A DNA stretch of 64,000 nt from Klebsormidium nitens (taxonomy: Eukaryota > Plantae > Klebsormidiophyceae). Shown here piece by piece: positions 13,501-56,600 of this stretch. Both the position numbers and the translations under genes were made by a program. The stretch is from assembly GCA_000708835.1 (NCBI GenBank), contig DF236983.1, positions 197,753-261,752 of the forward strand. The letters are read 5' to 3'. The notes under the pieces are model-generated. The model did not search any database, was not told where the DNA came from, and was given only the letters and a program-made list of their open reading frames with translations. Within the stretch, counting starts at the first letter, position 1, and each line of letters starts with the position of its first letter.

Positions 13501-14366
13501 TCATGTTTTGCTTTGTTCGGGCCCTTTCAGTCCACACTTTGTAGATAGACGTTGATCGACACAGCTGTTTGGCAGACCTTGACTTAGGGTGTACTTCATT
13601 TCGTCCGGTGCAGGTGTCCTATCTGCCTGAGGGAGTTCGGCGACGACGAGAAAGTGCGGCAACTGCCTGCATGTCGCCAGTAAGTCGCTCGCCCACTTTC
13701 CCTACAACTTCGAGCTTTTCTTGAACTCTTTAACGGCGCGTTTCCAGAATCAAGGCAGTGAAGTTTCGTTAGTAATACAGATGCTTAGTAATACAGATGC
13801 AAACTAACCAGCAGTTGAAACCCAATTGGCCGCTCGTGATGCGCAAGCGGCTGATACAAGGGATTGGCAAAGTTGTGTCGAGGTTTGCAGATTTGTAGAC
13901 TTTGTCTGTTCCGCGTTTTAGGAACGCGTTTTAGGAAGTTGTGTCTTAGAGACAGCAAATCACCTTAGAAATGCGGCCGGACCATAAACCTCCACATCTG
14001 GTCGGTTTCTGCCTCCCGTTTTTCAGAGAGGCGAAGGAAGTTTGCGGACGCTTACGGTGTCAGCCCTCACACAAGATCGAACTGCGGCTTTCTTCTCGAC
14101 CCTCTCCGTAGTGCACCATCCGAAGCAAACTGCAGGACCCCAGTGCTCCGTCCATCCAACGTCTGTTCAGTGTTGAAATCGATCCCTAAGCTAGAATAAA
14201 CCTCCCCTTCTTCTCGTGCAGCTCCTTCCACCCCGAGTGTATAGCGGAGTGGGTCGCCAAGCACAACACGTGCCCCCTCTGCCGGACGCTGCTTCTGCCC
14301 CCACTGCCGCCCGAGGGGCCTGCGGACGCCCGAACACATCCCGAACGCCCAAGTTCGGCAGTGTGA
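10569..14366 (+). CDS. ATL-type transmembrane RING-H2 E3 ubiquitin ligase
   Basis: Secure exons: 12370-12548 (TM ALFWSLTFFFSMTPFICACYGLCSVLCC plus basic stretch), 13240-13331, 13614-13679, 14222-14366, giving CPICLREFGDDEKVRQLPACRHSFHPECIAEWVAKHNTCPLC (C3H2C3). The 5' exons 10569-10662 (signal-like) and 11197-11379 are phase-1 compatible but less certain. Confidence 0.85.
11881..12420 (+). repeat. Five degenerate tandem copies (113-128 nt period) of a 3' splice site plus exon start
   Basis: The core t(c/t)tggag ends at 11927, 12055, 12171, 12287 and 12400. Copies 2-5 have CAG exactly 31 nt upstream (12024, 12140, 12256, 12369). Phase-1 translations: SPEKGAPFWSFTF, STEHRALFWSLTF, NTEKFALFWSHTF, STKKRALFWSLTF (the real exon). 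Confidence 0.85.
13352..13379. repeat. Perfect 14-nt tandem duplication (intronic)
   Basis: tctgataacgtggg x2. Confidence 0.9.
13769..13800. repeat. Perfect 16-nt tandem duplication (intronic)
   Basis: ttagtaatacagatgc x2. Confidence 0.9.
13912..13937. repeat. Perfect 13-nt tandem duplication (intronic)
   Basis: cgcgttttaggaa x2. Confidence 0.9.
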
Positions 14367-15450
14367 ACGGGCCGTCGCTCGTATCTATGCACTGAATCAG
14401 GTGGATTCTCTGAGCATGGGGTGTGCTCGAAACTTGTTTCCGCAAAAGTTCCCAGTCGGAAGCGGGGTGTTGCAAAGAAGCATGCGCTGAGCTGCGCCAG
14501 CGCTTGACTAGGTACGGGTAGAAGACCTTATAAGGTGTTCTTGCCGAAGCTCAGGTTGGTGTATAGACTCCGGACTTTTAAAGATTTGTTCGTGTTGGGT
14601 AACTTGTAAGTAGGAGTGATCTGCAGGCGGCAGTCGCATGTATCATTGATCTTGTAGCCACTCTAATTAGAAGCAGCAAAGTTGTACGAAAGTAGGTAGG
14701 GAACGTTCAAGCACAAGCTGCCGGCTGCGCCAGGTCATAGTCGCAGTGCTGAGCTGGGGAGATCGCATACAGATCTATATGCGGACCTTGTGCAACAACA
14801 CTAAACTTATAGAGTAGTTTGTCAATGCCTTCCAAACAAACGTCTATGCCCAAGCAATCAAGAATCTGGTTTGACTTTTAAGAGAACGTCAGAAGATGGG
14901 GTCTAACATAGTGGTGCAGGATTAGAGTGTTCTCCCTGATATCGATTGTTTTGCGCATCTTTTGACCTCAGAGTAAACATAGGCAGCATCGTCCCAATGT
15001 ATACAATCGAAGCTCGTTTCATCGTTTTACAAACTCAGGCTAGCAAGCATGTTCTAAATGAATTTCATGCATTCTGTTGAACTAGATCTTCAATCAAAAA
15101 AATCCATGATCATAGCTTTTGTCTAAGTATGCAATGGGTGCTACCATGTATTTCGGCCCATAATTTTTGAGATCGCGCGAGTATAGCTCTTAGTTCAGAT
15201 CGTTCTTGCGGGGAATCAACATGCATTGTTGTCTGCCGCAGCCACCGTCGCACGTGTACGTCAAACATTATACAATCAATTCAGAATTCCAAGCTTGTGA
15301 GATGTGCGCCAAGAGCCTGAGAAAGTGCATTGGGGGAAACTTGAGAAAAGCGGCAACTTTTCAGAAAATTACTCGCGGTATACAGACTGTACTTCAGCAA
15401 ATTCGTGAAAATGCAGCCGCGCCGCACATGGATGCTAGCGGCTCACAAGC

Positions 15451-15459
15451 AAAAGAAAA
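15451..15459 (-). terminator. Pol III oligo-T terminator of the tRNA gene
   Basis: TTTTCTTTT on the minus strand, starting 17 nt after the discriminator base. Confidence 0.65.
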
Positions 15460-15475
15460 CCGTGAATGAGAATGA

Positions 15476-15560
15476 TGGAGATCCCGGGTTTTGAACCCGG
15501 TACCTTTTGCGTTCTCAATCGTGCTGTGAAGCAAACGCTCTACCGATGAGCTAGATCTCC
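15476..15560 (-). tRNA. Intron-containing tRNA, anticodon CAC (Val), alanine-type body
   Basis: Reverse complement: GGAGATC TA GCTC ATCGGTA GAGC G TTTGC TTCACA[GCACGATTGAGAA]C GCAAA AGGTA CCGGG TTCAAAA CCCGG GATCTCC A. All four stems are fully Watson-Crick paired, the A and B boxes are intact, and a 13-nt intron sits at the canonical 37/38 position. Confidence 0.85.
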
Positions 15561-16002
15561 CGGGGTCTTATGTCGCAGATTGAGTATTGGTTTACGATCG
15601 CCGTAAACACTATGTACCGGTACCGCGGCTTGCACGTGCGGCCATACTCGTTGGCAATGCTGGATTACTTCGCATAATGACGAAGGCTCTTCAAAATGCT
15701 GAAAATGGTGACGCCAACGTACAAAACCATACGAGAAACCAGCTTCAACTTTCAAACCAAACAGGGAAGTCTTTCTGTGTGTTTATGCGAGCTTCAAAAT
15801 CATTGGTTTCCTAACACTCTATGAAAGAATCATGGCATAAACAAAGGAAGCGATGGTGGATTGCACCAACTCGAGCAAAGCTCTGCATTTATGCATCCGG
15901 CCAATTATGCCGGGGCCTAGGGGAGAAGATGTTGTGTCAGGCAGGGATTCACGTGTCACTGTGGTTCTGACTTCTGACTTCTGACAAGCTGGTTATAGCT
16001 GG

Positions 16003-19000
16003 TTAGAGCTTGTAATCATCAAGGCCCAGGTCTCTAAGTGCGGCGGAGGCTTCGTCTTTACATCGCGGATATTTGGCCCCTGCTCTTCTAATCAAAGGCT
16101 CTACCCCCTTTTCTAGAATGGGACCCCTGCACAGCAATGGACGTCACAATCAGAGGAAAAACAAGCGGTCAAGTTGCAGCGGCGAGGTTCCAAAAACGTG
16201 GTGCACGGCGCTGTGAGGTCCTCCGTTAAAGTTTCCTGATTCCCGACGTGTCACGTCAATGTGGTACCTGACACTTCGAGCGCAGGAGTTTGCGCGGATG
16301 GGCAGTGAAAAGGTGGAGAAAGGAGAACGCGTTGTTCAAGCAGCATAGACCATAGTGGCCACATCTCAAAGATCCCTTCTCCTCTCCGTAAAGCAGAGGC
16401 CTGACTGCAGAAGCACGACAAGGACTCTACATTGCGATATTCAGAGAGACAGGCTTCGGACCGGTGTCGAGATGGGCGCCCGTGGACCATTCCGAATCTC
16501 GAAACGCTCGCAAATGGACTCTAAAGTACACAAGCGCACGAGCAAGCGCACCAGAGGAAAGCAAACACAAAAGCAGACTGGTTTTATCTGACCGTTTCAG
16601 AAGGGTATCAGCCTACCTGTTGTCAACGTTCCTGACTGCCAGGTTCCGGATGAGTTGGCAAGCCTGCCGTTGCACTTCGAACGACTCCAGTTGCGACTCC
16701 AATGCTTCGACGGCGCAGTCCGCAGCTCTCGCCCGAAAAGCTAGGTCCGCGTTCTTGGCGTTGCGCAAGGTAAGTGCGGCCAAGGCGGCGAGGCCCTGCA
16801 AAAGCAAAGCAAGTAGACATCAGGTGAGTGCACGCTCAAAAGAACAGGGCAGCAGCCTCGCCTACAGGGCCTCCGGAACAATGATGATAATCTAAGAGCT
16901 GGCATACATTGAACGAACAAAGTAACAACAGATTTTCGGTTAAGCTAAACGAACAAGTAACAAAGCAAATTCGAATCATGTACTTGCTAGCCAGTCGGAC
17001 CGTACTTTGAAGTCTTCTCGACAGCTGCAGTCACCACTAGCTGGTCGCTGCCCTGAACCTCCAAGCCAGGCCATACACACGAACGATGAAGCTCTTCATC
17101 TCAGTATCCAAGTAACCGAAGCCTGTCGCACTTCATTCACCAACATTCGTGGAGTCCCGAGACCGGCAAACTACGCCCTTCCACATTTTTGAAACACAGC
17201 ATCTTTTGAAATTCGCAAAGCACGCAAAGTCAGCAGAACGTCCCGGAAATGGGTCTGTGCACCAGCCTCTACCTGATGCAGAACGGCGGGGCTATCGTGG
17301 TACCGCCCCAGCACGTTAACGATCGTGTCTAGGCCCCCGAGTTCCACCACTCGCTCCTTGTTCGCGTCGCTTTTCCCCAGCTGCTGCAGCAACCCGAGCG
17401 CGCTCGCTGCCACGGAGACGTTCTGCGCCTCGCTCGTCCGGGGGGCTCCGCTGACGGCGCGCAGGATTGCGAGGATGGAATCCAGGCCGCCCGCTTCTTG
17501 GACCTGCTTGCAGATGTCGTCCTGCGGGGTGACGAGAACAAGGGGTCTTCAACCATAACAAGGACCATAACCATGACCGTAACCACCTTATGTCAAGCTC
17601 CCTGGGGCAGGTGCTTCGTCATATGGTATGCTTGCGCGAGTGGACGAATCCGCCAGCTACCTGCACCGCCTTGCAGATGTCGCCCTGCGGTAGCTTTCGG
17701 CTTCTGACCCGTCGTGATTTTTCAAACCCTCGTACATCGTCATTCGCTCTGCAGCCAACTTGCAAAAAAATGAAACAACGCTCAAGGGGTCCTGATCGGT
17801 CGAACTGCGGACTCTGGCAGAGTTGACACTTCTTTAGTTGCGACTCAAGCAACTCCGCATCTATGCAAGAGTTTCTTCAGCCCTTGTACAGTGATGCGAG
17901 TGCAGAAGTGAGCTTACATTTGCTGCCAGGCTCGTGAGCGCGCCACAGAGAGCAGCTAAAGTCTCTGGCTGTCCTTGATGAACCTTCAACGCTCCTAGCA
18001 CAGCGTCGACTCCATCCGCTTTTCCAATCAACAGGGCATGTCGAAAACCCTGCAGGGACAGAAGCCCTTCTTGATCATGTCTTCGAGACAGGACATCAAG
18101 GAGGAAGTCAGGCCGACCGCCACTTCAGTGCGAATTGTTTACTTTAAACATCTGTATTTTAAGTGCGTCAGAAATATTCTCGTTGCTCAAAACGTGCACT
18201 CTTGATGGTGAACTCGGACAGATAATCGAGTCACAATCTTGCCAAAGCATTTGAATTGACGCTGAGAAGACAGATTTTGATTCACAAGACAAGAGGAGAC
18301 CCGCTTCAGTTGACAGCTTCATGAATGTCAATGCTCACCTTGGACGACAACGCCTTAAAGTCATCTGCAGTGGCAAACGCCTGCAGCGCAGCTGCCGCCC
18401 CACGTACAACCGCTGCATCTTGTGAGTGCGTCTTCAGCGCGTCAATGAGCAACTCCTCTGCTTTCCCCTCCATAAACTGGACTTTGTTGCCCTCGTGCTT
18501 GGTGGATGCTGTAGCAATGACCTCTGAACTTCTGGCCACTAGTGACGAGAGCGTGCGATGCGTGCGGAGACTGGCTAGCAGGCTGTCTGGGCCTGAGGAC
18601 TGGAGGAACGCCTCCTTGTTGTCATACTCTGCGCATGAGAACGTACTTATCAATACCCCAATCAATCAGCATTTTGAAGGATTGCTTCAGGGCTGATGGT
18701 GTTATTGACTACTCTGTGAAACATGCTAATCCAGAGCCCTGTGACGTTCGCTGAGGTGCAGCCGAAGTATTACTAAAGCAACAGAACTTGTTCCATCTAT
18801 GAAAGACTTAGATCTCATGCAGAACGCATGATGCTGCTCGTTAGAACACCCTTCAGAGGTGAGTGGCAGCTCAGGCTTTCCTACACAAGTGAAGAATACA
18901 AAGGTGTCACCTTTTACCACAAACTCTTGCACGTGGGATTGTCCCCCTCACCTGACAAAATCTTGCCAAGGGCGTCAAGCGCTCCAGCCAGCCTTTCACT

Positions 19001-19834
19001 GTCCTTGTCTTCTCCCAGATTGTTAACAGCATCAATCAAAATCCTAACACCCCCGCTCCTGCCAACCAGTGCCTCTGCCCCATCTTCTTTGCAGTTTAAG
19101 TTCAGGCTTCCTAGCGCTTCCTCGATTGTCCCTACACTAGCTGCGTCAGAGGCTGAACCGCCTTCTACAAACTCTTGGAGCGCCTTCTCCAGTGCTTGGA
19201 GCGCTTGGCTAGCGGGATGGTCCGCCACAGCCTGAGCACCACCGGGCTTGGTGATTATACCTGGAAGCAGAAATTAGCAATTAGGTTGCTGGAGGTAGCT
19301 TTAGGACTCGAGCAAGCTTCTTTGCACCAGCATCAAGAAGCATCAAGAAACAATGGGCGAGTTTTTTCCACAGCTTTGTATTGGTGGTGGTTTGATTCAA
19401 AAAGCTGGCAATCAGATCGTTTCAGCAGGACATGTTGCTGCTCTTCTTCAAATCCTGAAGCTGTCCTGCAATACAACCTCGTGTGTCAATGATGGGTGTT
19501 TGTTAGCTCACCCGATAAGTCTGCCCCCTGCATCTCAAATGTTTTCACAGCGTCTGACACCGCTTCATCAGGCTCCATGTCGAACTCTTCAATGTTCTCC
19601 TGCAGATCCACAACCAATTAGCAGATGCCACCCTGCGATTCCTCATCATGAGTTTTTAAGCCTGTGTGAGCGCTTTCATTCTTTCATCAACAAAAGCAGC
19701 TAGCATCCGGGGACTTTAGCTCGTGATCAGCGATAGAGCAGACATGCCCAACTAACACCACTCGAATTACCGACCTTCACAGCAGCATCAAAGGCCTCCT
19801 GCGAAACCTTTACTTTCGTGCTCTTCGGCGCCAT
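16003..19834 (-). CDS. ARMC6: Armadillo repeat-containing protein 6-like
   Basis: Exon 1 (19834-19775) MAPKSTKVKVSQEAFDAAVK continues into ENIEEFDMEPDEAVSDAVKTFEMQGADLSG, the family N-terminus. ARM-repeat exons follow (e.g. VQRQACQLIRNLAVRNVDNR). Last exon 16126-16003 reads GPILEKGVEPLIRRAGAKYPRCKDEASAALRDLGLDDYKL*. Confidence 0.88.
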
Positions 19835-40870: not shown

Positions 40871-43800
40871 ATGGCGGTCGAGACAGAGAAGAAGCCTGGC
40901 ACATGCAAGTGGTTCAACAGCACGAAGGGGTATGGGTACATCACCCCTGACGATGGTGAGCGCTTGCATTGCATTCAGAGCTGTGATCAGATTTTTTTTG
41001 ACCCTGATCCATCCCGAGGATTTTCATTCTTCTTGAGGTTTTTGAAGCATGCGAGGTCTGCTATAGTTGTCCCATAAGGATTTTTGCAACAGCATGAGGA
41101 ACATAGAGACTGATGAAGCTTCGATCTTCTGGAGGATCTTCAATTCTGTGCCATGTATCTGCTTCGATCTGGAAGGTCTGAAACAATGTATCTTATAGAG
41201 TTTTTGCTTTAAGGGCTCTGTTAATTTGAAATCTAGGTAAGTTTTCTTGTCCTGAGTCTTGCTTGCATGTCTGTTAAGTTCGAATCATGGAGATACTGCA
41301 TTCATGAGTGGTCTTCTGCCTACCTGGATCTTCTGTTATCTTATTGGCTCGTGTAGATTACACGGGAGACTTTTGGTCCATGTTTGATCCACAGCATGGT
41401 CTTTGAAGATTTTGTAATGGGTTGCAACTTTAGCCCAATGTGACAGCTGGAACATATGACAGCATCCAAATAGACAAGCCCTCACTTTCGAAGATCTCCA
41501 TCCCAGGAACCCAATGGGTTTTGCTGATGTACTTCAAAATCTGAACAGTATTTCATTGAAAAAATGGTTACTGCTGAGCAGACCATTACCACTTGATCAG
41601 GGATTGTGAGACGCAGTGGGGATGCTTAACCTCATTGGAAGTGCAAAACATCTGTTATTTCGGAATCCCTGATTCTAAGCTGACTAGCATTCTTGGTGTT
41701 TTTGTAGGACGAAATCTTAGCCTGACTCGAAGCGAGAAAGCTCGCTTGCTTCGTCCGGGTGCTTGTGTCATCATCAAAAACCTTCATGCAGCTTCTGAGA
41801 GTACCTGCTTATCATCGCAGCGTCTTGTCTACTTTCGTCGCCGATCTGACCTTGATTTCCTCTCTTTTGAATTCTAGAAATGGTTACTTCTCCAAATTTG
41901 CGCTTTCTTTGCTTGCTTCCAGGAAGCGACGACCTCTTCGTGCACCAGACCAGCATCCACGCCGACGGCTTCCGCAGCCTCAAGGAGGGCGAACCAGTGG
42001 AGTTCACGGTTGGTACCGGCGATGACGGACGCTTGAAGGCGCTGGACGTCACAGGGCCTGGCGGTGCAGCCGTCCAGGGTGCACCCCGCGAGCAGATGAG
42101 GTGGGGTTCCTATCCTCTGCGTTCTGAATCTTCAGCTGCATCCCGAAGGAGTCTTAAGAGGCAGCCCTCTTCAAGGTATTCTTCGTGGATGCTTCTCTGT
42201 TAACGTCTTGAAGGACGTGGAGAAGCTCTTGCTTGAATCGAAGTTTGCGAATCACTTGTCTGTGAAACTTGGGCATGTGGAAACCAACTTCTTCAGGGTT
42301 GAAAAGCCAAATTGCTTGTCCTGATTCATTCTAGAAAATGAAACTTTCTGATTCTTCAGATAACATCCATTTTGCTCCGTTGCCATTCTACTCGATTCCT
42401 GGGAGGAGGTATGAAGACTGCTTTTGCGTTGGGTTTTTACATTTCAAGTATAGTCTTCCAATGTCTTTCTGGCTCGTCAAAACCTTTGAGCTGTTCTCAG
42501 TCCGCAAAGCACCATCGATCTTGGTTATCACTAGCCCTTCTTTCAAACCTTTCGCATGTCTTGATTGGCAACTTCGACTTCTCACCAATCACTCCAACCA
42601 TTCACTGCTCTGAAGACCTTGATCCTTCGGATTGTGGCAATCAGATTCAATCTAAAACTTAGGAATTCTGCTTTCTTGGTTGTTCTTCAATCATCTTCAA
42701 ACTCATTTGTACTTGAGTTTCGAAATGGATTCAAAGGTTTCTGGATTTCGACACGCCCCTCGTTGGAATCATCGGGGTATGATCCGGTTCAAGCGGGGCG
42801 GCTCATAAGTCTTCTTCCTCGAAGCAACAGATCAATACTTCTTTTCCATTCGTTTTAGTCTTTTCATCCAGCCCACCTACCACTATCTTGCAGACATCGC
42901 GTTTCTCTAAGCGGCGGCAGCAAAAGCCAAACTGGAGGCTGCTTCTGCTGTACCTCAGACTTGTATGAAGGAATCTCGCTTTTCTAGGACTTCAATAAGT
43001 CCTCTCCGAATTGAACGGCTGCTCTTTCATCCACATTCTGTTCGCGCACTTCGCCGTTGCTTTCATCCTCAGTATCGAATGTCGATCACCCATTTCCACC
43101 CGTTTCCACCATCTCATCCATCTCTTATCTCAGGGACCGTGCTCCTATGGGCGGCGGCGGCGGCTATGGTGCTGGAGGCGGCGGCTATGGCGGCGGCGGC
43201 GGCGGCTACGGAGGCGCGGGCGGCGGGGGCGGCCGCGCGTGCTACCGCTGCGGCCAGGAGGGCCACATCTCGCGCGACTGCCCCAACGAAGCGGGAGCGT
43301 GGGCGGGCGGGGGGGGCTACGGGTGGCGTCGGGGAGGAGGCGGCCGTACGGGCGGGGGGGGCTACGGGCGCGGGCGGTGGGGGCGTACGGGCGGGACGGG
43401 NNNNNNNNNNNNNNNNNNNNGGGCGGTGGGGGCTACGGCGGAGGAGGGGGAGGCTACGGGGGAGGAGGCGGCGGTGGCAGCCGGTGAGCCTGAGAGCTTT
43501 GATTGATGACTTTTTGTTGCGTTTCGTGTATCTTCATCCGTCTCTTTGGAACAAGATGTGGGCGGCTGAAATTGTACGGCCTTTCGATGAAAGAAAGGCC
43601 TCTCGGATGCTCACAACGGAAATGAGATGATTTAATCTTGACAATCTTTGATGACCGTTGATTAGGATACGCCTGATCCAACTTTCAAACAGCAAACCTT
43701 ACACCAAGATCTGCACTGCGCTTGAGACATTAGCCAGCGAAGGCATCTGGGGTCCATTCTATCGGCTTTCACCGTTCCCCAGAATCCGCGATAAAAGACG

Positions 43801-53600: not shown

Positions 53601-56600
53601 TACATACATTGCCCGACAGGCTTCCTAGTATAAGCACTCATTTCGTGACATCGGATGCAGGTGCTTCCGCACCTTTTTCCTCGGTAAGCAGCACCAGCTG
53701 CGCTTGAACCCGCGTAGAGAATTGCCCTCGCTTCAAACGTGGACAAACGCTGACCCCGTGTTCATCTCGCAGACGTTTGAGATCAACAACCACACGGGTC
53801 ACCAACTAGAGGAGGACGAAATCCAGGAGGCGCACTGCCGGCGGCTGTACGACCTGCAGCTGCTGTGCTTCCAGCAGTGGCCGCAACTGCGCCCGCTGGC
53901 GCTCAGCCACGTGGGGGCCATCGAACGGCGGGACCAGCTCGCGAAATTCCTGGCGGTGCTGTCGGACGAGAAGCTGCGGACGCTGGTCACGGAGCATGTA
54001 AGCACACGCGGTGGCGGCCGCGCTGTCAGTCATGAAGCTGCTGGCATCCTGTTTGAGTGGCTGGATTTGTGTTCAGATTAGACGCGGTCAGCTTTTCTTT
54101 GAACCTGAGTGTCGAAGGGATTTGCCACTCGTGATCTCAGAGCTTGATCGCTCAAGCCTGGCCTTTGACGTTGTACTATCACGCGAACGGCGACACAATT
54201 CGACAACGACGCCATCGATCACGACTTCGATCAGAATTGCAGCTTCATTGGTTTCCAGTGTCTGAACAGAGCTGCAAGTTCAGGTCGCGGCAGTCGAGGA
54301 TTAAAGAGATAAGATCTGACTCACGAATTTACTTTCTTGAACTCTCTGCAGTTGAAGCTCGTGTCGCCCGACGACTCTTGGATCCACCGCCCCGGCTTCC
54401 TGCTCGAGGTCGTCCTGCAAAACTTCGAGCGGCGCCCGTCGCAGCGCGAGTTCGTCAACGAACTGCCGCTCTACCCCAACGAAGACGTTCTCTGGGACGA
54501 AAACCTGGTTCCGAGCATTAACTACACCGGGGAGGGCTGCCTCGCGCTCCCAAAACTCAACCTGCAGTTCCTAACCTTCCACGACTACCTCCTGCGGAAC
54601 TTTAACCTGTTTCGGTTAGAGTCGACGTACGAGATCCGGGAGGATTTGGGCGACGTTTTGCAGCGGGTGAAGGCGGGACGGAACCGGGACGAGGAAGTAG
54701 TGTTTGGCGGGTGGGCGCGCATGGCGATGCCCACGAAAGGGTTTAGGGTGACCGAGGTGCGGGCGCCAAACATCGGGGAGGTGAAGCCCGCGCGGGTTTT
54801 GGCGGAGGTTAAGATAACCGTGGCGGGGTTAAAGGACGTGGTGCGGGCGGAGTGGAACGACATCAAGGAGCACGACGTGCTGTTTCTGCTGAGCATACAG
54901 CCGGCCGTCGCGAACGAGGGGGAGGAGAACGGGGCAAAACAGGAGGGGGAAAGGAAGAGCGTGCCGGAGCGGTTCGGGTTGAAGTTTGTGCGGGGGGCAG
55001 AGGTGGTGGAGATGAGAGACGAAGTCGGGACGCTGATGAACGATTTCAGCGGGCGGACGAAACGGGAGGACGTGAAGCCCCCGGAAGGGAACGAGCGAAC
55101 AATTGTATTAGCGCTCGATCAGGCGCAGTACCAGTTGGACGTGACGGCGACCGCGGAGCGGGGGGCGCCGGACGTCTACGCGGGGTTCAACCTGCTCGTC
55201 CGGCGGAAGCCGAAGGAGAACAATTTCAAGGCGATCCTGGAGTGCATCCGCGATCTGATGAACGAGAATAACATCGTGCCGGAATGGCTCAGGGAAATTT
55301 TCCTCGGGTACGGAGACCCCGCGGCCGCGCAGTACCAAAACCTGCCGGAGAAGGAGCAGCTCCGGACGATCGACTTCAAGGACACGTTTCTTAGTGCGGA
55401 CCACTTGCGGGAGTCGTTCCCGGGTTCGGACGTCCGGTTCGTGGGTCAGGATAACGAACCGGACACGGAACCGAAGCCGCCGTTCCGGGTCACGTTCCCT
55501 CCTCGGAAGGAGGAGAGCAGCACGCCGGTTATCAAACCGCCCGCAAAACGGAAAGGGGTAGACGGGGAAGTCGCGAACGGGGGCTCGGCGATGGAAGTAG
55601 ATGGGGCGAAGCAACTAGAGGCGGAGCCGATCTTGGCGCAAAGTTATGTGCCGCCGGACCCCGGCCCATACCCGCAGAACCAGCCAAGGCAGAACAGCGT
55701 GCGGTTCACGCCCGTGCAGGTGAGGGGACAATGGGATTCGCGCTGGCATTGGTTATTGGCGTTCTTTGGACAGATTGAACAGAGGGTGACACTCCTGTGC
55801 AAGTACAGGACTAAGCATGGGCTTTCTTTCTGTACGTTCGGAGGACGGCATCCACGCTTTAGTTCCTGCGGTCAGATTTGCGGGATGCAGATCGAGTCTG
55901 ACGGAAATGTAGGCAGTCTGAAAGCCCTCCTGCAACATGAACTAAGACCCCGATCTTCTACGTGCAAATTACAGCTTCGATCACCAGCTGCAAGCATAAG
56001 ATGGTCAGCAACTGTATGAAGGTAAATGTCATCAACATTTCGTTGAAGAACGGACCCTTAACCCATCGATCTGGGGTCTTGTCAGGTGGAGGCGATCAAG
56101 TCGGGCGTTAACCCCGGGCTGACAATGGTTGTTGGGCCCCCGGGGACCGGCAAGACCGACACGGCCGTCCAGATCCTGAACGTGCTATACCACAACTGCC
56201 CGGGTCAGCGGACGCTGCTCATCACGCACTCCAACCAGGCGCTAAACGACTTGTTCGAGAAGATCATGCAGCGGGACGTGCCGGCGCGCTATTTGCTGCG
56301 GCTGGGTATGGGCGAAAAAGAACTGGAGAGCGAGCAGAACTTTAGCAGACAGGTGAGGATTCTGACGTTTTACCGTTCCTTATGTACTACTTAGCCAGGT
56401 TCTTTTTAGATAAGACTCAAGCCTTTCTGTGAGGGACCGACTGCTTTTACCGAAACTGAGGGCAATTGAAAGGAGTACACTTTGGTCAAAGCGGATAGGG
56501 ATTCCGCTAACCTATGGGACAGACGTTGGTGAGCAGACGTGCCAGCTTCCTTTTGTGAAGTTTGCAAAAGTTGTAGGAAGAGCATTTGCAAGTTGGCTTG

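Follow-up and report, generated by a model that had tools for sequence, protein, structure and literature searches.

Results

The feature under study is a tRNA gene of 85 nt (the precursor without CCA) located at positions 15476 to 15560, on the minus strand, of the 64-kb window, by which we mean the whole stretch of Klebsormidium nitens DNA that was analyzed. The Rfam tRNA model (RF00005) aligned with the strand read from 15560 to 15476 over its full length (model positions 1–71 of 71), with a score of 57.1 bits and an E-value of 1e-9; the gathering score of this model is 29. ARAGORN also reported the gene and detected no second tRNA in the 64-kb window, and a permissive Rfam scan of the neighborhood returned no rival RNA family at the locus. 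The two exons were delimited from the sequence and its pairing. The 5' exon (15525–15560, minus strand) holds positions 1–37 and consists of the acceptor strand GGAGAUC, U8 and A9, a D arm with the stem GCUC/GAGC and the 7-nt loop AUCGGUA, G26, the anticodon-stem strand UUUGC, and the loop bases UUCACA. The 3' exon (15476–15511, minus strand) holds positions 38–73 and begins with C38, followed by the stem strand GCAAA, the 5-nt variable loop AGGUA with A48 as its last base, a T arm formed by CCGGG, the loop UUCAAAA and CCCGG, the acceptor strand GAUCUCC, and the discriminator A73. The 21 stem pairs are Watson-Crick throughout, without a G·U or a mismatch, and the core nucleotides U8, A14, G18, G19, A21, U33, G53, U54, U55, C56, A58, and C61, as read off the sequence, are all present. 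The pre-tRNA folded with a free energy of −32.0 kcal/mol (z = −4.3 relative to shuffled sequences), and the spliced 72-nt form, produced for folding by joining slices of the window, adopted a clean cloverleaf as its minimum free energy (MFE) structure.

Internal promoter elements of Pol III type 2 were recognized in the sequence, namely an A box, TAGCTCATCGG, at 15543–15553 (minus strand; a single match in the window) and a B box, GGTTCAAAACC, at 15487–15497 (minus strand; its 3' half matches once in the window). A Pol III terminator, TTTTCTTTT (T4CT4), is found at 15451–15459 on the same strand, that is, from +17 to +25 past the tRNA 3' end. Weak plant-type signals, all of them consensus matches only, occur in the 40 nt upstream of the gene (15561–15600, minus strand): one CAA triplet lies at −29 and another at −22, and A/T-rich motifs were noted at −34, −28, and −11. 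An earlier note on this DNA, made by reading the sequence, had described an intact cloverleaf with A and B boxes, a 13-nt intron, and an oligo-T terminator; all of these were found, the minus-strand orientation being an added detail, and it is virtually certain that the gene is real and intact.

The tRNA gene is flanked by two Pol II transcription units, in the 709-bp gap (15017–15725) that separates them, and lies about 165 bp past the 3' end of the upstream gene. Contigs of four public RNA-type runs cover 14300–15016 and 15726–16125, and in all four runs they include a spliced joint, 16125 to 16616, with GT..AG on the minus strand. The gap itself is uncovered in all four contig sets, but such assemblies hold no tRNAs and are uninformative for this gene. 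The earlier note had also considered that the gene could be the head of a tRNA-derived SINE, and a search for copies within the 64-kb window did not bear this out. The gene and its 709-bp setting are single-copy in the window, and the locus shows neither a shared 3' body nor a target-site duplication; a tail, whether A-rich or of simple repeats, is likewise missing. Moreover, the terminator 17 nt past the tRNA leaves no read-through body, and the intron is kept, whereas a retroposed mature tRNA would be without one. On the evidence of the 64-kb window, we regard a SINE head or any other retroposed copy as very improbable.

Several observations were made on the neighboring sequences. An ARM-repeat protein gene occupies 15999–19228 on the minus strand, with exon-like ORFs at 18914–19228, 18306–18665, and 17171–17413. 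Its intron at 16126–16615 (GT..AG on the minus strand) is supported by spliced contigs from the four runs, and its last exon (16125–15726) ends with ...DLGLDDYKL, a stop codon near 16003, and a 3' UTR extending to about 15726. Low-depth contigs from two runs are unspliced across 16100–16645, which represents intron retention or pre-mRNA. At 16099–16422 and 16616–16700, one DNA-labelled run contributed contigs that are about 99.7% identical to the window together with others that are 80–92% identical; the diverged contigs have many substitutions and a replaced stretch at 16233–16321, and spliced forms occur as well. This run is probably either a mixed or RNA sample, or one containing a second diverged haplotype or species. 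Farther along the window, a gene for Aquarius, an intron-binding protein, has a long exon at 54337–56016 on the plus strand (Pfam Aquarius_N_2nd, 1e-49; Aquarius_N_3rd, 1e-20), and a run of 20 N at 43401–43420 marks an assembly gap.

The strands of the anticodon stem are 20 bases apart, and 13 of these bases have to be excised to leave a 7-nt loop. Enumeration of all possible 13-nt excisions gave the anticodons AGA or CGA (Ser), CAA (Leu), and CAC (Val). Ser and Leu tRNAs require a long variable arm; because the variable loop of the candidate is 5 nt, as in a class I tRNA, CAC is the sole reading that fits. Excision at 37/38 would remove the 13-nt intron GCACGAUUGAGAA (15512–15524, minus strand), seen as an insertion in the Rfam alignment, and would create the loop UUCACAC, with U33 and A37 and with the valine anticodon CAC (15526–15528, minus strand), which reads GUG, at its center. 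ARAGORN with default settings called the gene tRNA-???, and when introns were allowed it proposed Ser(AGA) with an intron at 33/34. The latter assignment was rejected, because the RNA lacks a long variable arm and the intron would sit at a non-canonical position. We infer the 37/38 splice position, since sequence alone does not fix where the intron lies; the loop UUCACAC, which the earlier note had reported along with an A:U pair at 3:70 and A73, was confirmed on the sequence given this canonical splicing, as were the other two features. Once spliced in this manner, the tRNA would very probably read GUG. In streptophyte algae, tRNA introns lie mostly at 37/38 alone. About 34% of the nuclear tRNA genes of K. 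nitens carry an intron, and the 13-nt intron is therefore unremarkable; it stands as the feature that had been described, but not as an oddity.

The unspliced precursor folds differently from the textbook substrate. In its MFE structure the anticodon is paired with the intron, as happens in ordinary pre-tRNAs too, to form a continuous extended hairpin (5+3+3 pairs with a 5-nt loop), and the 5' splice site sits within a helix. A bulge-helix-loop can also be drawn, with a pair between position 32 and intron position −3 and a 3-nt bulge that includes the 3' splice site; its energy of −27.3 kcal/mol is 4.7 kcal/mol above the MFE fold.

We compared the candidate with the ends of Arabidopsis tRNA-Ala(AGC) (taken from primer sequences), wheat tRNA fragments, and the nuclear and plastid tRNA sets of Agrostemma (supplement of PMC8662596). 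Hand-counted element by element against these angiosperm references, which are hundreds of millions of years distant from the alga, the candidate was identical to Ala-AGC at 55/73 positions (75%), to Ala-CGC at 54/73 (74%), and to Ala-UGC at 53/73 (73%); the corresponding counts were 44/74 (59%) for nuclear Val-UAC, 41/74 (55%) for nuclear Val-CAC, 41/73 (56%) for Lys-CUU, 36/72 (50%) for Thr-UGU, 44/74 (59%) for plastid Val-UAC, and 39/72 (54%) for plastid Val-GAC. The alanine-type body that had been proposed for the gene is thus supported by 73–75% identity to Ala as against 50–59% for all other comparators, and when the anticodon arm was left out of the same hand count with angiosperm references, the values became 77–80% for Ala and 53–54% for Val. 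The two acceptor strands match Ala at 5/7 and 6/7 positions, but match Agrostemma Val-CAC at only 1/7 and 1/7. The D stem is identical to that of plant Ala, whereas its strands match Agrostemma Val-CAC at 1/4 and 1/4, and the eukaryotic Val body (a D arm of the GUGU..UCAC type and a Val-type acceptor) is absent from the candidate. G26 is common to the candidate and plant Ala, and U15 to the candidate and plant Ala-CGC. The variable loop is identical to that of Ala-AGC and ends in the unusual A48; in plants, this loop reads AGGTA or AGGCA in tRNA-Ala and AGGTC in the other isotypes compared. In a survey of eukaryotic tRNAs, unusual 15:48 pairs were encountered in tRNA-Ala only. The T arm resembles Val and Ala about equally. 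Taken from the sequence, these comparisons indicate that the body is probably alanine-derived. An origin from a plastid tRNA-Val transferred to the nucleus is less likely, with identities of 54–59% and a different acceptor stem. Nuclear tRNA-Val or tRNA-Ala sequences of K. nitens were not printed in the literature searched (a review and the PlantRNA 2.0 preprint), and a table in PMC7678280, which lists 62 tRNA genes with 29 anticodons for K. nitens and in which CAC is absent, was set aside, as it has zero A34 anticodons and is clearly incomplete.

A metagenome scan with the 5' half of the gene, GGAGATNTAGCTCANNGGTAGAGCG, matched 33 loci, every one of which is an organellar, bacterial, or phage tRNA for Asn, Phe, or Cys. 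No orthologue of the candidate was present among these 33 loci, and because all the matches are unrelated, this half by itself does not identify a tRNA as Ala. Several of the unrelated metagenome genes, for tRNA-Asn(GUU), have 12- to 14-nt inserts in the anticodon loop that repeat GTTAA, and were classified by ARAGORN as intron-containing Asn.

Land-plant tRNA-Ala (Arabidopsis At1g06610, wheat, and Agrostemma) has the acceptor stem GGGGAUG/CAUCUCC, compared with GGAGAUC/GAUCUCC in the candidate. In addition to the D stem, G26, and the variable loop with A48, the two share the pairs 30:40 and 31:39, A73, and, for Ala-CGC, U15. Unlike land-plant tRNA-Ala, the candidate has no G3·U70, has CAC in place of NGC and C38 in place of U38, and possesses a 7-nt D loop, the 13-nt intron, and the T loop UUCAAAA. 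The stem pairs that differ are 7:66, 27:43, 29:41, and 50:64, and in each of them both sides have changed with pairing kept. The earlier note had argued from paired stem changes for selection rather than decay. Against the baseline of angiosperm Ala, all four differing pairs are compensated, and such compensation together with the lack of mismatches favors the view that the gene is under constraint, although the Ala tRNAs of Klebsormidium may simply have some of the compensated states themselves.

The anticodon arm gave a different result from that of the body. This arm (15509–15534, minus strand; stem UUUGC/GCAAA, loop UUCACAC) is identical to that of plant Val-UAC at 14/17 positions and to that of Ala-CGC at 11/17. 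From its sequence the candidate looks like a mosaic of an alanine body and a valine-like anticodon arm. The resemblance of the arm to Val could have arisen through selection for fit to ValRS or the ribosome, through exchange with a Val gene, or by chance within 17 bases. The gene had been explained as a tRNA-Ala(CGC) with three changes, and this holds insofar as the loop differs from that of plant Ala(CGC) at exactly positions 35 and 38 and the 3:70 pair is A:U; however, a simple three-step descent is too neat, because the anticodon arm is closer to Val(UAC).

The valine-like arm is also an argument for a reading in which the lineage has this gene as its ordinary tRNA-Val(CAC), the body being common to all its Val(CAC) or all its Val genes, with an ancient or convergent likeness to Ala. 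That the T arm is about as near Val as Ala agrees with such a view, as does the occurrence of D arms of the type TAGCTCA..GGTAGAGC in many isotypes. Land-plant tRNA-Val (CAC, AAC, and UAC) shares with the candidate the anticodon CAC, A37, C38, A73, G45, and a regular acceptor helix, in addition to the 14/17 arm (UAC); by contrast, its acceptor and D arm are unrelated, the overall identity being 55–59%, and land-plant tRNA-Val genes have no intron. The Val acceptor and the D arm of the GUGU..UCAC type are kept in angiosperms as well as in human and silkworm, and since these bracket the alga, the Klebsormidium ancestor should have had them too. The candidate retains little of either, as the Val matches of 1/7, 1/4, 1/4, and 1/7 show, and it instead has an Ala acceptor (5/7 and 6/7) and A48. 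We therefore consider an ordinary tRNA-Val of this kind quite unlikely. Furthermore, if the body were shared by all Val(CAC) genes, this would indicate an older, completed recruitment and would not refute one.

We examined the identity elements of the candidate, which carries A3:U70, G4:C69, A35, C36, C38, A73, and G45. According to a review of tRNA identity, G3·U70 is the major Ala determinant throughout evolution; insect and human AlaRS no longer charge a tRNA in which it is replaced by A3-U70 or G3-C70, and in Arabidopsis alanylation is blocked by G3-C70. The same review lists A35 and A73 as strong valine determinants of eukaryotic tRNA-Val and A35, C36, and C38 as strong determinants for wheat-germ ValRS, and notes that E. 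coli ValRS is impaired by a G·U at the third or fourth acceptor pair. The identity rules that the earlier note had cited as pointing to Val (A35/C36, C38, and A73, with G3·U70 for AlaRS) hold in this review. Thus, the candidate has the Val elements A35, C36, C38, and A73 and an acceptor helix free of G·U at both 3:70 and 4:69, and it lacks the tRNA-Ala marks, having A:U for G3·U70 and CAC for NGC. Because A3:U70, A35, C36, C38, and A73 coincide under the published rules, the candidate is predicted, with a good likelihood, to be charged with valine and not alanine. A tRNA with the anticodon CAC has work to do, since GUG was the commonest Val codon (23/45) in one coding exon sampled.

Mischarging was weighed against this prediction. 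A tRNA with an alanine-type body could be recognized by AlaRS, which ignores the anticodon, and would then insert alanine at GUG; miscoding is known for tRNA-Ala variants with mutated anticodons. The absence of G3·U70, and of any G·U at 4:69, speaks against such an activity. As A3-U70 abolishes alanylation, we take alanine insertion at GUG to be highly unlikely.

The remaining alternative is that the gene does not decode at all and is an alanine-type offshoot, either a young silent pseudogene or a tRNA-like RNA in which the unspliced 20-nt middle extends the anticodon hairpin. The unspliced MFE fold, an extended hairpin in which a helix encloses the 5' splice site, is consistent with this, and so is the literature, in which genes with a mismatch between anticodon and body are often pseudogenes. 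The lack of coverage of 15017–15725 in the four RNA-type contig sets (assemblies not holding tRNAs) points in the same direction. On the other hand, the 21 pairs without a mismatch and the compensation of every stem difference from plant Ala are not what such an offshoot would suggest. The 13-nt intron has a size and a place that are ordinary for plants, and taking it out leaves a textbook 7-nt loop with U33 and A37, which stands beside A3:U70; a switch of identity calls for precisely the changes seen at 3:70, 35, and 38, and drift is unlikely to have produced them. We judge a non-decoding offshoot to be unlikely, and on sequence grounds it is reasonably likely, as we predict, that the candidate is expressed and used.

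Discussion

We propose that the candidate is a tRNA-Ala gene recruited as tRNA-Val(CAC) through an alloacceptor shift, a reading to which we assign a probability slightly better than even (about 0.55). According to this proposal, a stand-alone nuclear Pol III gene would give rise to a precursor from which the 13-nt canonical intron is removed, resulting in a 72-nt tRNA with the anticodon CAC that reads GUG. The gene would have descended from a tRNA-Ala gene, the Ala-type acceptor, D arm, G26, and A48 having been kept; we infer from the sequence that this descent took place within the present lineage. The mark for AlaRS would have been lost by the change of G3·U70 to A3:U70, and the ValRS marks A35 and C38 would have been gained beside C36 and A73, which were already there in Ala(CGC). 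The product would be charged with valine and would act as tRNA-Val(CAC), either alone or in addition to others. Among the three outcomes that the earlier note had considered, a recruited tRNA-Val is the one favored by the identity nucleotides and the Ala body, whereas A3-U70 argues against mischarging with alanine, and the terminator and the single copy in the window argue against a SINE head.

The plastid of Klebsormidium adds a further consideration. The genes trnV(gac) and trnV(uac) are gone from klebsormidiophycean plastid genomes, and the loss of both in Klebsormidium has no parallel among streptophyte algae. Because there is no plastid tRNA-Val gene, nuclear tRNA-Val must be imported into Klebsormidium plastids, and this loss suggests a possible, testable link between the present candidate and tRNA import. 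One could imagine that the nuclear tRNA was remodeled for import into the organelle, where it supplies, or is tolerated by, plastid translation, but we hold this to be very unlikely. In this view, the candidate would matter for its bacterial-looking D arm, TAGCUCA..GGUAGAGC, found where eukaryotic tRNA-Val has a peculiar D arm of its own; any connection of the gene with the plastid loss is pure speculation. A milder version of the idea would have the whole Val(CAC) family of the alga replaced by alanine-derived genes.

If the candidate is expressed and valylated, it would constitute a clean nuclear example, from the green lineage, of a tRNA passing from a synthetase of class II to one of class I, and the route would be legible in the sequence, with one change ending the Ala mark and two (A35 and C38) making Val marks. 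It would show that an alanine-type tRNA gene can be recruited to another codon without miscoding, and would provide a natural test of which parts of the tRNA body ValRS and the ribosome truly need. If the gene is silent, it would be one more mismatch between anticodon and body of the sort routinely flagged by tRNA annotation pipelines. In either case the predicted amino acid is that of the standard code, and no codon reassignment is implied.

Alloacceptor shifts are already documented in other eukaryotes, and the candidate would be a further case. Rogers and Griffiths-Jones (2014, PMC3923123) described 31 shifts in primates, flies, nematodes, yeasts, and enterobacteria, with position 35 being the commonest site of change; plants and algae were unsampled. 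Like the candidate, these tRNAs combine the body of one isotype with the anticodon of another, and a change at position 35 is accompanied by changes at the ends of the molecule, which is where identity elements are located. Those shifts were found by synteny, and the candidate differs from them in the passage from AlaRS (class II) to ValRS (class I), the loss of G3·U70, the intron, and the Val-like arm. The remolding of mitochondrial tRNAs (PMC4783518), the yeast mitochondrial tRNA-Thr derived from tRNA-His (PMC3113583), and the CUG reassignment in yeasts (PMC5951914) are comparable in that one copy of a duplicated tRNA gene comes to serve a codon of another isotype. These cases make up for a gene lost from a tiny genome or alter the code, whereas the amino acid predicted for the candidate accords with the standard code. 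The CCA-tailed tRNA-like RNA GUT15 of Arabidopsis (PMC6152437) has an altered anticodon region without a usable anticodon arm; the candidate, by contrast, would have a normal 5-bp stem and 7-nt loop after splicing.
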